IMG/VR virus record: IMGVR_UViG_3300044712_001937
Span: 124,001 to 188,000 of that record
Strand: one strand, 5' to 3'
Length of the DNA: 64,000 bases
Under the pieces are notes generated by a model, which worked only from the letters and a program-made list of their open reading frames with translations, had not been told where the DNA came from and did not search any database. The position numbers were made by a program, and so were the translations under genes. Shown one piece after another: positions 13,439 through 29,625 of the stretch (positions within the stretch are counted from its first letter, which is position 1; every line of letters begins with the position of its first letter).

Positions 13439-13526
13439 GTCGGGTTGCGTGAGTGGTCGAAACGGGGGTTCTGCAAAAGCTCTATTCCGAAAGGTACACA
13501 TTGGTTCAAATCCAATACCCGACTCA
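13439..13526 (+). tRNA. tRNA-Cys(GCA), long variable arm
   Basis: gtcgggt/acccgac acceptor, ct-gca-aa loop, U73. Confidence 0.85.
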
Positions 13527-13530
13527 ATAT

Positions 13531-13620
13531 TCTTGGGTTGCTTTAGTTGGTCGAAAAGTCCAGACTGTTAATCTGGTGAGATTTATCTCCATCATAGGTT
13601 CGAATCCTATCCCAAGAGCA
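13531..13620 (+). tRNA. tRNA-Asn(GTT), long variable arm
   Basis: tcttggg/cccaaga, ccaga-ctgttaa-tctgg, V-arm gagat-tt-atctc. Confidence 0.85.
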
Positions 13621-13687
13621 GTAATTTATTTATTAATATTTAGGTCGTTTGTTCGAATATAAAGTATTTATATTAAATATTTAATAT

Positions 13688-14317: not shown

Positions 14318-14402
14318 AGTGACGTGGATGAATGGTTTAGTCACCAGTCTGATACACTGGATTCTTAGGAATAATATGGGTTCGAATCCCATCGTCACTA
14401 CA
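14318..14402 (+). tRNA. tRNA-Ile(GAT), long variable arm
   Basis: agtgacg/cgtcact; ccagt-ctgatac-actgg; V-arm attc-ttag-gaat. Confidence 0.85.
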
Positions 14403-16176: not shown

Positions 16177-16225
16177 CTCGGTCGTTTTTTGTACTTCTCA
16201 GTATTTATATTGAAAAGTACAAATT

Positions 16226-21179: not shown

Positions 21180-22068
21180 AAATAACACAGAGGATTCATC
21201 GCTGTAGCAATACAGAGGAAGTTCAACACATCTCCGCAAAAAGTGGGAGGCTCAACGTTAATCGGAGTCGTTAATACCACTGAGGATGCAAGCCATACAG
21301 ATTTAGACGGTGTGCGGGTCTATGATAATCGGGTTGGTGCTTAGATAAATGATGAATTTAAGTTCTTTGATTTTTTATTTCATTATTTATTTTTTATAGT
21401 ATTTATATTTATAATTGAATATTATGAAAAATAAAATTTATTATGTGTATCAATTAATTTCTTCAAATGATGAAATTTTTTACATTGGAAAAGGTTCTGG
21501 TAATAGAATGTATCAGCATGTTAGTATTGCTATGGGTAAATCAATTAGTAGAACAAAAAATCTTAAACTATATAATAAAATAAAGAAAATTATTGATAGT
21601 GGTGGATTTATTAAATGTGAAATTATTTTTAAAAGTGAAAATGAAAATGATTGTTTTAATGAAGAAATAAGACTTATAGAAAAAATAGGTCTTATTAATT
21701 TATGTAATTTAACTATTGGTGGTGAAGGTACTTCGGGATATAAATTATCTGAAGAAACTAAATTAAAAATGTCTTTAGCTAAAAAAGATAAAAAAAGAGA
21801 AAATATAAGTAAAATTCATAAAGAAAATTTATTAAAAAATCCTCAAATTTTTAAAATTGGTCATGATGGTTATTGGAATGGTAAAACATTATCTGAAGAA
21901 ACTAAATTAAAAATGTCTTTAGCTAAAAAAGGTCGTAAATTTTCAAAAGAACATAAAGAAAAAATATCGCAATCATTAAAAGGACGAGAACTTTCAGAAA
22001 CACATAAAAATAATATTAAAAAATCAAAGACTTATTAAAACAGAAAGTTGACTACGCTCATGTTATTT
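21180..22068 (+). ncRNA. rnpB: Minimal RNase P RNA interrupted by a homing-endonuclease insert
   Basis: P1 aaataaca/tgttattt; P2 attcatc/gatgaat; P3 ctgta-gcaa-tacag; GAGGAAGUUCAAC pairing with AACAGAAA-GUUGACU (P4 with bulged U); tagataaat before the P2 3' strand. Confidence 0.85.
21424..22038 (+). CDS. GIY-YIG homing endonuclease with NUMOD3 repeats, inside rnpB
   Basis: YYVYQL...FYIGKGSGNR...NLTIGGEG; LSEETKLKMS twice. Confidence 0.88.
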   Translation: MKNKIYYVYQLISSNDEIFYIGKGSGNRMYQHVSIAMGKSISRTKNLKLYNKIKKIIDSGGFIKCEIIFKSENENDCFNEEIRLIEKIGLINLCNLTIGGEGTSGYKLSEETKLKMSLAKKDKKRENISKIHKENLLKNPQIFKIGHDGYWNGKTLSEETKLKMSLAKKGRKFSKEHKEKISQSLKGRELSETHKNNIKKSKTY

Positions 22069-24035: not shown

Positions 24036-24111
24036 GGCTCTATAGCTCAATTGGTCAGAGTGACAGTCTCTAAAACTGGAGGTTATGGGTTCGAACCCCA
24101 TTAGAGCCACA
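24036..24111 (+). tRNA. Amber suppressor tRNA (anticodon CTA)
   Basis: ggctcta/tagagcc; cagt-ct-cta-aa-actg; canonical D and T arms; A73. Confidence 0.9.
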
Positions 24112-26342: not shown

Positions 26343-27600
26343 TTTTATTCTCCCTCATACTTTGTATTTCTGGTTGACCTATATAATTTCTTAAATTTTT
26401 AGCTAAAATCCAACCAGTTCGTTTTTTTCCATCTTTATAAATTAAATCAATTTTCAATGATAATTCATTATCTTCAACATCATATTTAAATTCAATGATA
26501 TTAATTGTTTTATCTGGTTGTTGATGTGTGGCAATAATACCTTTTTCATTATTATTAACAAATTTAAATTGAGAAATATATGCTTGTAATTCTTGATATC
26601 CTTTAATATAAGAAAAATATTCACTATTTTCATCATTAAATCCATCAATAATATCATCTAATTTATTACCTACAACTCTGTTTAATTCAGTTAAATCCAT
26701 ATGATTATATCCTTCTTCGCTAATTTTATCAGCACTAAGTTCATTATTTTCACCAATAATATCTAAAAATTGGTCAAACGTTTCAATATTTTTCAAATCA
26801 TAATTGTAAATATATGGTAGAATTTTATCTAAGAAAATGAATGTTTCATCATCATCTATTTCCATAGGAAATGATTTTAATTGGTTAATAGCAGCTTCTT
26901 TTTCAGCTTCACCTTTTGATTCACCATATTCAGACATATAAATATCATTAATATCATCTAAATTATTCTCAGCTAAAAATTCTGTTAATTTACCTTCATC
27001 TTTAAATGAATCGATAACTTCATCTGTAGCACCCATAATTTTTGCAATTTCTTTTATTTTATTCATATTAACTGCTGATATTGAATTTTGCATATAATCC
27101 AATTCACTACTATCTACATCAGAATTTGAATTATAATATGAAGCATAACCATTTACATAATCATAATCATATTCAAGGTCTGTAGCATTTAATATAGCTT
27201 GTTTATCGGTATCAATATTAATCCAATGACCTTTATAATTATCAACAATATTAATATCTTTAATATTGGTTTTACCATATTCACTATTTTTTATGAAATT
27301 AAATAATTCTTCAGCATTTCCTGAATTTTCATAATTTAATAAGATTCTTAACAGTCCTCCACTATTACTATTATATGCTTCAATATATGGTAAGACATAT
27401 TGACGTACTTTTTCATCAACATTTGTATTATAAATTTCATATTGTTCACCAATATTTAATTTACTTAAATCTAATATTTTATTTTCTATAGCAAATTTGC
27501 TAAATTCATATGGTCTATATTTATATCGTTGACTTTGAGAAGCGGCTATTGCTCTTTTTCGATAATATGTAGTTACTAATTCTCTTTGTGCTTTATCCAT
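26332..27600 (-). CDS. Hypothetical acidic protein
   Basis: 422-aa ORF after AGTATTTATA on minus strand. Confidence 0.75.
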   Translation of the reverse strand: MDKAQRELVTTYYRKRAIAASQSQRYKYRPYEFSKFAIENKILDLSKLNIGEQYEIYNTNVDEKVRQYVLPYIEAYNSNSGGLLRILLNYENSGNAEELFNFIKNSEYGKTNIKDINIVDNYKGHWINIDTDKQAILNATDLEYDYDYVNGYASYYNSNSDVDSSELDYMQNSISAVNMNKIKEIAKIMGATDEVIDSFKDEGKLTEFLAENNLDDINDIYMSEYGESKGEAEKEAAINQLKSFPMEIDDDETFIFLDKILPYIYNYDLKNIETFDQFLDIIGENNELSADKISEEGYNHMDLTELNRVVGNKLDDIIDGFNDENSEYFSYIKGYQELQAYISQFKFVNNNEKGIIATHQQPDKTINIIEFKYDVEDNELSLKIDLIYKDGKKRTGWILAKNLRNYIGQPEIQSMRENKNGR

Positions 27601-27787
27601 ATTTATGGTAAATTTATTATAAATACTTATTTAACTTTGTTTTAAATTCTAATAGTATGAAAATTATAATTTATGTTATAAAACATATAAATTTATTTGT
27701 TTTATAAAAAAAGAATGTGCAAATTTGTAGCTCAATAGTATTTATACTTTTAAAAGTATTTTAATAAATTAATTTAAATTAAAAGTC

Positions 27788-28117
27788 ATGAAATAGGTAA
27801 AATTAGTAACAGTAACTCGAAAAGACTTAAACGCAGGGTATCAAGTTGCCCAAAGTATTCATGCTGCAACTACATTTGCAGTTAAATTTCCAAACCATTT
27901 CCTAAATTGGTTTGAATCTTCAAATTACGTCATATCGTTATCAGCCGATAACGAAGAACATCTCAAAAACATATATAATAAATTAGTTTCTAATGGAGCT
28001 AATGTTGTGGCATTTACTGAACCAGACATTAACGACCAATTAACATCTATTTGTTTTTATGGAACTCCGGAGATGCGTAAATTAACTCAAAATTTAGATT
28101 TAACACTTAAGAATTAA
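27788..28117 (+). CDS. pth2: Peptidyl-tRNA hydrolase (Pth2/PTRHD1-like) with in-frame TAG at codon 3
   Basis: ATG AAA TAG then VKLVTVTRKDLNAGYQVAQSIHAA...NYVISLS..NEEHL...FTEPDINDQLTSIC; next in-frame ATG is near the C-terminus. Confidence 0.8.
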
Positions 28118-28122
28118 TCGTT

Positions 28123-28407
28123 ATGGAAACATATAGAGTTGAATTTAAATTATATCAATACAATAGTGGTGCTGCCGATAATGGTACATTTACTAAAGGT
28201 ATTAATTGCTCTACCTTGGAAGAAGCTAAATCAATTAAAACTAAAATTGATAAAACTTATATTAATTATGAGTTTGATGATAACCTTTTAGAAGGTGATA
28301 ATGATGCTATATGGGTTAATGAATTAATATATAAATTAACTCCTTGTGGTGGATTTTTAAAAAGTATTGCAGAAATTTATTTAATAAGTAAAACAAAAAT
28401 TGAATAA
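28123..28407 (+). CDS. Hypothetical protein
   Basis: ORF. Confidence 0.6.
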   Translation: METYRVEFKLYQYNSGAADNGTFTKGINCSTLEEAKSIKTKIDKTYINYEFDDNLLEGDNDAIWVNELIYKLTPCGGFLKSIAEIYLISKTKIE

Positions 28408-28409
28408 TT

Positions 28410-28763
28410 ATGTACAGAATTACATATGAACAGGGTAATGGCTATCGTTGTGGCTGTTGCAGAAGAACAAGTGTTGAGACTATTGATTTAGTATCTGAAG
28501 AAGAAGTTTTTGATTGGATTGAAGAACTTCATGCATCATTTAAATTTCCAAATTGGGAAGATGAAGATGACCGAGAATTATTGTCTATTGAAAGAGAAAT
28601 TGGTGTTGATATTTCAGACCAATTTACCCCAAGACCTGATAAACTTGAAGCAAAAATTGCTGAAAGAAAAAATAAAATTGATGATAATAATAAAAAACGT
28701 GAATATGAAAATCGTCAATTAGAATATAAATTATATTTAGATTTAAAAAACAAATTTAATTAA
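28410..28763 (+). CDS. Hypothetical protein
   Basis: GYRCGCCR motif. Confidence 0.65.
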   Translation: MYRITYEQGNGYRCGCCRRTSVETIDLVSEEEVFDWIEELHASFKFPNWEDEDDRELLSIEREIGVDISDQFTPRPDKLEAKIAERKNKIDDNNKKREYENRQLEYKLYLDLKNKFN

Positions 28764-28765
28764 CT

Positions 28766-28801
28766 ATGAAAGATACATAGATACACTCCAGACCACCATA
28801 A
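28766..28801 (+). other. Amber-interrupted mini-ORF MKDT*IHSRPP* (putative regulatory leader)
   Basis: ATG AAA GAT ACA TAG ATA CAC TCC AGA CCA CCA TAA. Confidence 0.55.
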
Positions 28802-28863
28802 TAATATTCATAAGTAAGGTATCTTTTTTCATAACATAAGTATTTATATCAAAATTAATACTT

Positions 28864-29625
28864 ATGATAAATAAATTAAATTTAAAAGAAGGTGCTTATT
28901 ACATTGGTACATGTAGAAATACTAATATTGCTAAATGGTTTAATGGTAAATTTGTTTTTATTAATAGAAATTTTAATGAATTGTATGTAGAAACAATACC
29001 ATATTTCGGAGATGTAAAAAAAGAAAATAGTGATGGATTTATTCCCATTGAAGAAATAAAAATAAATTTTGATAATATTAGTGAAGAGAAGAATATTCAA
29101 GATTATAAAAATTATGCAAGAAAAATATATCTTAATTTATCTTCTGAAGATTTAACTAATGAAATTTGGAAAGAAATCCCAAATTATGAAGGTTTATATT
29201 ACGTTTCCAATTTAGGCAGAATAAAAAAATATGACAATAATAAAATAATGAGACAAAATTTTTGTCGAGAATATTTAGTTGTTGGATTAACTGATTATAA
29301 TCGCAAACGTAACACATGCAGGGTACATAGATTAGTTGCATTAACATTTAAAAAAAATAATGATGATACATTAGAAGTAAATCATATTAACGGAATAAAA
29401 ACTGATAATAGAGAAATTAATTTAGAATGGATTAGTCATTCAGAAAATTCTAAACATACTTATATTTCAGGAAATAAAATAAAAAAATTAACTCCTGAAA
29501 TGGTCGTAGATATTAAAAAAATGTTAAATAAAGGAGAAATCCAAAAAAATATTGCAAAAAAATATAATGTAGCTTGTAGTACAATATGTGAAATAAATAA
29601 AAATAAAAAATGGACAAATATTTAA
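28864..29625 (+). CDS. NUMOD4-HNH homing endonuclease with N-terminal extension
   Basis: EIWKEIPNYEGLYYVSNLGRI; VHRLVA; VNHINGIKTDN...NLEW. Confidence 0.9.
   Translation: MINKLNLKEGAYYIGTCRNTNIAKWFNGKFVFINRNFNELYVETIPYFGDVKKENSDGFIPIEEIKINFDNISEEKNIQDYKNYARKIYLNLSSEDLTNEIWKEIPNYEGLYYVSNLGRIKKYDNNKIMRQNFCREYLVVGLTDYNRKRNTCRVHRLVALTFKKNNDDTLEVNHINGIKTDNREINLEWISHSENSKHTYISGNKIKKLTPEMVVDIKKMLNKGEIQKNIAKKYNVACSTICEINKNKKWTNI

Follow-up and report, generated by a model that had tools for sequence, protein, structure and literature searches.

Recoded phages, among them Lak, crAss-like and other gut phages, carry suppressor tRNAs, for which a role as a post-transcriptional switch has been put forward (Borges et al., 10.1101/2021.08.26.457843; Peters et al., PMC9523058). 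Between 26% and 71% of their genes, mainly late and lysis genes, contain many in-frame stops, and their coding density collapses under code 11. The authors of the paper on Xanthomonas phage XacN1 could not identify the target genes of its suppressor tRNAs, and those of the papers on RsoM2USA and Atu_ph07 guessed at suppressor targets only as "several potential genes". PTH2 proteins have been noted in jumbo phages and in phage tRNA arrays (Iyer et al., PMC7824862; Morgado and Vicente, PMC5966550); these reports deal with the superfamily that concerns us here and make no mention of an early stop or of a link to a suppressor tRNA. Synthetic AND gates have paired an amber suppressor tRNA with an amber-interrupted gene (e.g., PMC11669171). 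Our full-text search, with subscription journals outside its coverage, found no paper in which an early stop within a PTH2 gene is connected with a suppressor tRNA.

Here we analyze a locus in which these elements occur together. Within a 64,000-nt stretch of viral DNA (the window), a small gene for a PTH2-fold protein is interrupted at its third codon by an in-frame amber stop, and an amber suppressor tRNA lies on the same strand 3.7 kb away. Comparison of this locus with its relatives makes it highly probable that the stop and the suppressor tRNA form a dedicated one-tRNA, one-gene translational gate on a PTH2-fold hydrolase.

A hidden gene with an early in-frame stop

Positions 27788-28117 of the window (+ strand) read ATG AAA TAG GTA AAA and onward. 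The ATG, a single Lys codon and the in-frame TAG (27788-27796, with the TAG at 27794-27796) are followed, in frame 0 relative to this leader, by a body of 106 sense codons (27797-28114) and by the true terminator, TAA, at 28115-28117. Direct reading therefore bears out the preliminary description, which had reported ATG AAA TAG ahead of 106 in-frame codons and placed the next in-frame ATG near the C terminus; the first ATG after the stop is codon 92, and the earliest in-frame GTG, TTG or ATG of any kind is a GTG at codon 70, so a canonical start cannot give the whole PTH2 domain. The base directly 3' of the TAG is a G, a purine. The TAG at 27794-27796, which had been marked for a check against reads, is upheld by a separate assembly, at ~20x depth, of a rhizosphere metagenome run that may itself be the source sample; the two sequences are identical over positions 26800-29200. 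The sequencing runs that matched when we sought RNA-level evidence were DNA only. The hidden gene and its early in-frame stop are real.

A promoter-like motif, TTTG-N11-AGTATTTATA, occupies positions 27724-27746 (+ strand), ends 42 nt before the ATG and is kept upstream of the gene in relatives. In its general form, TTTG-N6-11-AGTATTTATA, the motif has three exact matches in the window (13648-13672, 16188-16209 and 27724-27746) against 0.07 expected, and 13 copies genome-wide at no more than one mismatch, mostly 15-50 nt before ORF starts; it may serve as a promoter. We found no conserved protein partner beside the gene/tRNA pair, the neighbors being DUF4419, homing endonucleases and unknowns, and PADLOC gave no match. 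Genes for GIY-YIG and HNH homing endonucleases are dotted through the tRNA region, including positions 21415-22038 and 28864-29625 of the window. The same region holds long class I tRNAs for Cys (87 nt, 13439-13525), Asn (89 nt, 13531-13619) and Ile (84 nt, 14318-14401) beside normal-length duplicates; these may contain insertions or introns.

The protein encoded by the body matches the Pfam family PTH2 (PF01981) over residues 1-75 with 26.6 bits against a cut-off of 23, and phrog_1866 with an E-value of 5.5e-13. Its AlphaFold2 model is confident (pLDDT 95.5, pTM 0.88), and the best 15 Foldseek matches comprise 14 structures of archaeal Pth2 or human Bit1 and the uncharacterized Atu0240 (2gax), with TM scores of 0.63-0.83 overall, ~0.74-0.83 for the Pth2 and Bit1 crystal structures, and E-values down to 2e-8. 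The Pfam threshold and the predicted Pth2 alpha/beta fold thus place the product in the PTH2 superfamily. The Pth2 equivalog models TIGR00283 and NF003314 score it at 20 bits against cut-offs of 82 and 126. The initial assignment to a Pth2/PTRHD1-type peptidyl-tRNA hydrolase therefore stands at the level of fold and superfamily and fails at that of a bona fide Pth2 equivalog; we do not claim membership of PTRHD1, since the PTRHD1 literature gave no biochemical information. Canonical Pth2 uses the Lys of a GKGK loop and the Asp of a DAG-T motif as catalytic residues. The RxDL and AQxxHA motifs are retained in the body, the canonical GKGK lysines align with Ala/Tyr, and an invariant E-P-D ... 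T stands in place of the C-terminal catalytic motif; across our alignments the invariant residues are R8, G14, Q19, H22, E75-P76-D77 and T83. The product is a divergent, EPD-motif PTH2-fold protein and presumably acts as an aminoacyl- or peptidyl-tRNA hydrolase.

Other PTH2 genes in these phages are not gated. A canonical PTH2 with an ordinary start is also present in XacN1 (ORF295), Atu_ph07 (gp680) and RsoM2USA (ORF157), whereas the gated copies belong mostly to the divergent EPD-motif branch. The phage genome to which the window belongs (G000) itself encodes a distant EPD-motif PTH2-like paralog of 189 aa (G000:C1:270799-271383, - strand) with an ordinary ATG and no early stop, and second EPD-type copies of this kind also occur in related complete genomes. 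Gating is therefore a property of particular PTH2 branches, which hints that the gated enzyme may have a specialized role tied to the suppressor.

The window comes from a complete virus record of 364,702 bp that has direct repeats at its termini. This genome has 26% G+C, 49 tRNAs and one tmRNA, and ARAGORN places 22 of the tRNAs within the window. A phage-encoded tRNA(CUA) and a low G+C content are typical of recoded phages, and it could be supposed that this phage uses the alternative code 15, with TAG as a sense codon throughout. Yet reading TAG as sense leaves genome-wide coding density as it is under code 11, TAG ends 26 genes in a crude call of 507 (431 end in TAA and 50 in TGA), and our scan of the genome found an in-frame TAG in one gene only. 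Coding density and stop usage rule out genome-wide TAG recoding, in agreement with the earlier statement that TAG is not globally recoded here, and we regard the use of code 15 as extremely unlikely.

A codon-usage-scored scan of the whole genome turned up no second case of an ATG-X-TAG leader ahead of a long coding frame that lacks a start, and no further TAG-gated or TAG-interrupted gene was convincing in this genome, in pT24 or in a further genome, G001. Four TAG sites flanked on both sides by coding sequence were rejected as adjacent genes with an immediate ATG, a pattern that TAA shows as well. At G000:C1:216527 (+) and, just past the end of the window, at G000:C1:188031 (+), a TAG is followed by a coding frame, of 88 and 68 codons respectively. 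Both score well and have neither a canonical start nor an ATG leader; they could represent unusual starts, frameshifts or more cases of read-through. An RF-1 domain gene was not found in this genome. The tmRNA lies at G000:C1:111992-112351, 12 kb upstream of the window start, and its tag peptide ends in ...AELAIAA.

Conservation of the stop and its match to a suppressor tRNA

The early stop is widely conserved. It is present in all 12 of the closest IMG/VR loci, none of which has a sense codon at that place, in 33 of 34 loci of a wider, alignment-based viral scan and in all 77 metagenome loci with a readable 5' end. The first three distant homologs, from two uncultured phages of ~635 kb and from Tenacibaculum phage pT24, are 35-46% identical and all gated, with leaders M-T-stop, M-N-N-stop and M-K-stop directly before the domain. 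De-duplication of the viral and metagenome contigs left 100 distinct bodies, of which 92 have TAG, 7 TAA and 1 no stop; in other words, the check on conservation called for at the outset shows an in-frame stop just ahead of the domain and a few codons after an ATG in 99 of 100 distinct homologs, at pairwise identities down to ~35%. A profile search puts the size of the family at 2,864 clusters at 50% identity.

The amber at codon 3, presented as the hallmark of the window gene, proved to be the commonest arrangement and not a fixed one. Counted from the nearest upstream ATG, the stop is at codon 3 in 62 of 103 loci, at codon 4 or 5 in 34 and at codon 2 or 6-10 in the rest, and the overall range across homologs runs from codon 2 to about codon 20. 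The leader peptide itself is unconserved (MK, MT, MKL, MAQ, MSH and others). In all 103 distinct loci the +4 base after the stop is a purine, against a background of ~69%. A purine after a stop codon favors nonsense suppression, and we infer that it does so at this gate. In the phage LR756500, a second leader, ATG AAG TAG ATT, follows directly after the gated gene (L151:8320-8400) with only 14 codons behind it, and looks like a remnant of a duplicated 5' end. At L013:1800-3000, the leader and its TAG are the in-frame continuation of an endonuclease-like ORF.

Two mundane explanations for such a stop are a sequencing error and a decaying pseudogene. Pseudogenes are usually recognized by a lone premature stop, and in GenBank the gene has been left out or shortened by annotators. 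Against these explanations, the separate 20x assembly is identical to the window, the stop is kept in more than 100 loci, and the body is intact, with invariant motifs and a confidently predicted fold. With more than 100 independent loci sharing the early stop, neither chance nor sequencing error can explain it, and the probability that we assign to error or decay is negligible.

Many database proteins of the family start inside the domain, as would be expected if gene callers were halted by the early stop. The gated gene is absent or cut short in the GenBank records LC168164, LT960552, KY630187, OQ632216, MF403008 and MG752970 and in those of the Erwinia pEa_SNUABM phages, and in Salmonella phage Arash it is annotated only as a 50-aa "peptidyl-tRNA hydrolase".

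The suppressor tRNA of the window is a 75-nt molecule at positions 24036-24110 (+ strand), for which ARAGORN draws a cloverleaf with a 7-nt anticodon loop, CU-CUA-AA. It is thus a nonsense suppressor in the sense of having a cloverleaf and an anticodon complementary to a stop codon. The canonical tRNA(CUA) reported earlier at 24036-24111 is accordingly genuine, and its end is corrected to 24110. ARAGORN's label for it, "tRNA-Pyl", is assigned from the anticodon by itself. The architecture of tRNA-Pyl includes a small D-loop without the conserved GG and a 3-nt variable loop. The window tRNA has G1-C72 and A73, a D-loop with GG, a standard T-loop of the GGTTCGAA type and a variable loop of 5 nt, and we rejected an identity as tRNA-Pyl on these grounds. 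In deposited records, such suppressors are labeled tRNA-Pyl, tRNA-OTHER or, in Myrna, tRNA-Ser. A covariance model built from 18 such suppressor tRNAs finds suppressor tRNAs as its top matches in other phages. Similarity to the 48 other tRNAs of the genome is 70-76%, values that are uninformative on amino-acid identity. Because suppressor scaffolds differ between phage lineages, the suppressors probably insert ordinary amino acids, and the residue may not be the same in all of them. Within the window, two opposite-strand genes lie between the tRNA and the gated gene, so the two are not co-transcribed there.

Among the 12 close loci, all have a tRNA(CUA) 30-1,300 nt upstream on the same strand, and the usual distance between suppressor and gene across the family is 30 nt to 5 kb, again on the same strand. 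The distinct set includes 62 TAG loci with a CUA tRNA in the fetched flank, and wherever a TAG locus has any suppressor in its flank, that suppressor is CUA; the other TAG loci mostly have very short flanks or belong to a clade of ~600 kb phages. All four TAA loci with enough flank carry a tRNA(UUA) and no CUA. The co-occurrence of TAG and tRNA(CUA) that had been proposed for scoring is thus upheld, with no discordant pair of stop and anticodon among loci that have a suppressor in the flank. On the maximum-likelihood tree, TAA rows fall at no fewer than three places, forced by well-supported branches and each nested among TAG/CUA relatives. The UUA tRNAs share acceptor and arm sequences with the CUA tRNAs of these relatives, and two different scaffolds have switched to UUA.

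The third stop codon is represented by Agrobacterium phage Atu_ph07, whose authors describe an opal suppressor as its only suppressor. We find the tRNA(UCA) at ~430.7 kb and neither CUA nor UUA among its tRNAs. One of its PTH2 genes has a Shine-Dalgarno sequence, an ATG, five codons and then an in-frame TGA; in GenBank this gated CDS is made to start from an ATG inside the gene and thereby loses the first beta strand. The corresponding gene of Sinorhizobium phage Phosso, 73% identical to that of Atu_ph07, has TAG at codon 4. From this TAG we predicted a CUA suppressor, and two tRNA(CUA) genes were found in Phosso, of which one is on the same strand, 4.6 kb upstream. Where the stop is missing, a suppressor was missing as well: in Klebsiella phage RaK2 the gene lacks an early stop, its EPD motif is degenerate, and none of the phage's nine tRNAs is a suppressor, while the stopless locus L048 has no suppressor within 6 kb. 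In pT24, whose genome is complete, the pair stands by itself: the one solid tRNA gene, located 2.6 kb upstream of the gated gene, is an amber suppressor. We saw no further gated gene in pT24, and 33 of its 288 crude genes end in TAG.

This covariation of TAG with CUA, TAA with UUA and TGA with UCA, together with one confirmed prediction, argues that the suppressor decodes the stop in its client gene. Together with the conservation of the early stop, it also lends strong support to two ideas put forward in the preliminary description, namely that the hydrolase is made only on amber read-through and that the amber is read by the phage's own tRNA(CUA). By comparison of loci, the putative gate is shown to be ancient, under selection and matched to its cognate suppressor.

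Read-through, restart and exceptional loci

The arrangement could in principle work without any suppressor if ATG-X-stop were a tiny upstream ORF and ribosomes, having terminated, restarted at the very next codon, with the tRNA serving other ends. Indeed, 47 of 103 loci have a weak start codon, ATT or ATA, directly after the stop, but in the other 56, the window included, the codon there is GTA, GTT, AAT, AAC or AAA, none of them a start codon; GTA and GTT are the forms found in the window and most of its close relatives. Phages of proteobacteria (Pectobacterium CBB, Cronobacter GAP32, Serratia BF, Yersinia fHe-Yen9-03, Acinetobacter ME3, Salmonella Arash and Ralstonia RsoM2USA) have a good Shine-Dalgarno sequence 6-9 nt before the ATG, and the codon after their stop lies 15-18 nt from it and is AAT, AAC or ATT. 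In the 735 kb phage LR756501 (L149:7989-8330), in-frame TAGs occur both at codon 3 and at about codon 37, each followed by ATT TA, with two tandem tRNA(CUA) genes 2.1 kb downstream of the gated gene in a region that otherwise uses the standard code. Restart cannot account for this second TAG, inside the body, nor does it predict a match between stop and anticodon for all three stop codons. The points in its favor come from particular groups: in some large phages the TAG is retained although no tRNA(CUA) could be detected, and in mycobacteriophages a GTG after the TAG sits at a good Shine-Dalgarno spacing. Overall, we judge restart in place of read-through to be very unlikely.

These groups merit description in their own right. 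In the clade of ~600 kb phages that keep the early TAG (LR745206, LR756502, the L039 contig and L040-L049), a canonical tRNA(CUA) was not found in a search that covered the L039 contig in full and nearly all tRNA matches of LR745206. The early TAG of this clade is always followed by ATT, and it is possible that UAG is read there by host or near-cognate tRNAs or by unusual tRNAs, or that ribosomes restart at AUU. LR756504 has no canonical tRNA(CUA) and only a tRNA with an 8-nt anticodon loop, A-U-U-C-U-A-A-C, which contains UCUA (L138:346-421, equivalent to LR756504 281045-281120, - strand; anticodon reported by ARAGORN as "tcta"). The gated gene of this phage reads TAG ATT, and the tRNA could read AGA, UAG or UAGA. 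Quadruplet decoding of UAGA by this tRNA was considered and rejected, as the +1 frame closes after about 10 codons.

In the cluster C mycobacteriophages Myrna and IkeLoa, a start codon is followed by TAG and then GTG, with the Shine-Dalgarno sequence placed for the GTG and a tRNA(CUA) 130-250 nt downstream; these phages retain the adjacency of gene and tRNA but may bypass the gate. The gated frame of XacN1 has an in-frame ATG four codons after its TAG. In this phage, the EPD-type domain forms the C-terminal part of a 283-codon frame (L249:949-1797, equivalent to AP018399 243744-244592) that opens with a Shine-Dalgarno sequence and then ATG AAG TAG; by eye, the N-terminal half of the frame looks like an HD-type phosphohydrolase.

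The proposed gate and its relation to known recoding systems

We propose that ribosomes would start at the ATG, add one Lys and reach the UAG, where release factor 1 would terminate and leave only a dipeptide, or the tRNA(CUA) would insert an amino acid and allow the full protein to be made. The output of such a gate would track suppressor activity relative to release-factor activity. Placing the stop at the very start would mean that a failed read-through costs no more than a di- to tetrapeptide and that any inserted residue is likely to be tolerated. With low confidence, we suggest that the gate ties the dose of the hydrolase to suppressor-tRNA activity or to termination capacity. Candidate purposes include a sensor of release-factor capacity, which comes near to the switch suggested in the preliminary description, matching of hydrolase dose to suppressor dose, feedback on the suppressor, and a delay or threshold filter.

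A broader and tentative possibility is that gene and tRNA make up a portable circuit, in which the tRNA would mainly control this enzyme and the EPD-type PTH2 would act on the very state of translation that the gate measures. Two versions can be envisaged. In one, the gate would be a ratiometric release-factor sensor, with UAG sensing RF1, UGA sensing RF2 and UAA both; in the other, it would be a feedback controller whose product hydrolyzes the suppressor's own acyl or peptidyl form. A suppressor of this kind, resident in the phage, could also seed later whole-genome stop-codon recoding in phages.

Alternatively, the main job of the suppressor could lie elsewhere, in C-terminal extension of TAG-ended phage or host proteins or as a first step to recoding, with the hydrolase a secondary passenger or sensor. 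The genes that end in TAG in G000 and pT24 would be partly read through, and Borges et al. propose that suppressors are acquired before recoding. Nevertheless, searches of G000 and pT24 revealed no second in-frame client, the authors of the XacN1 paper saw nothing informative apart from amber terminators, and ochre suppressors would act on the main terminator of these phages, a point against strong read-through in general. Its tight linkage to the suppressor, and the joint switching of the two, mark the hydrolase gene as the selected client, and we consider a main job elsewhere unlikely.

The proposed gate on the hydrolase suggests what the suppressor tRNAs of standard-code jumbo phages are for, the proposed client being a small PTH2-family gene with a cognate stop at the second to fifth codon. 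It would constitute a natural one-tRNA, one-gene AND gate, conserved in phages of Bacteroidota, Proteobacteria and probably Actinobacteria, and would provide an evolutionary foothold that may explain how suppressor tRNAs persist ahead of genome-wide recoding. Its recognition also corrects the annotation of a gene that is missing or truncated in many GenBank records. As the gate is present in cultured phages (Tenacibaculum pT24, Cronobacter GAP32, Serratia BF, Acinetobacter ME3, Sinorhizobium Phosso and the cluster C mycobacteriophages), it is directly testable.

Several known systems share parts of this design. The prfB gene for release factor 2 has an early in-frame UGA that is passed by a +1 frameshift with the help of a Shine-Dalgarno-like stimulator and without a dedicated tRNA, and its product reads the stop. 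Here, too, an early in-frame stop would set output by competition between termination and recoding, but the body is in frame 0, recoding would fall to a suppressor tRNA, and the product is no release factor; with no +1 shift, the locus does not qualify as prfB-type recoding. The bar minigenes of phage lambda are stand-alone units of a start, one or two sense codons and a stop, which are toxic through drop-off of peptidyl-tRNA and are associated with the host pth (rap) phenotype. The leader described here has the same start, one or two sense codons and stop, and a thematic tie to peptidyl-tRNA hydrolase. Its codons vary, however, and the mini-frame continues in frame into a conserved domain (106 codons in the window) in all loci, so that it is not a stand-alone minigene of the bar type. 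As in the decoding of selenocysteine and pyrrolysine, a dedicated tRNA would read UGA or UAG in particular genes, although the tRNA(CUA) of the window has an ordinary D-loop and T-loop, and we know of no SECIS- or PYLIS-like requirement for this gate. Synthetic AND gates likewise yield protein only if the mRNA and the suppressor tRNA are both present, whereas those gates are engineered and the one proposed here is natural and conserved among phages from at least three bacterial phyla.

A parallel also exists with recoded phages, in which, as is proposed here, a phage tRNA decodes in-frame stops in phage genes while the host stays on the standard code. The differences are that the genome studied here keeps the standard code, that a single small gene with one stop at its very start is involved, and that all three stop codons are used across lineages, each with its cognate tRNA. 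What appears to be new is that suppressor-dependent decoding, known in phages, has been reduced to a dedicated single-gene gate that is apparently usable with any of the three stops.
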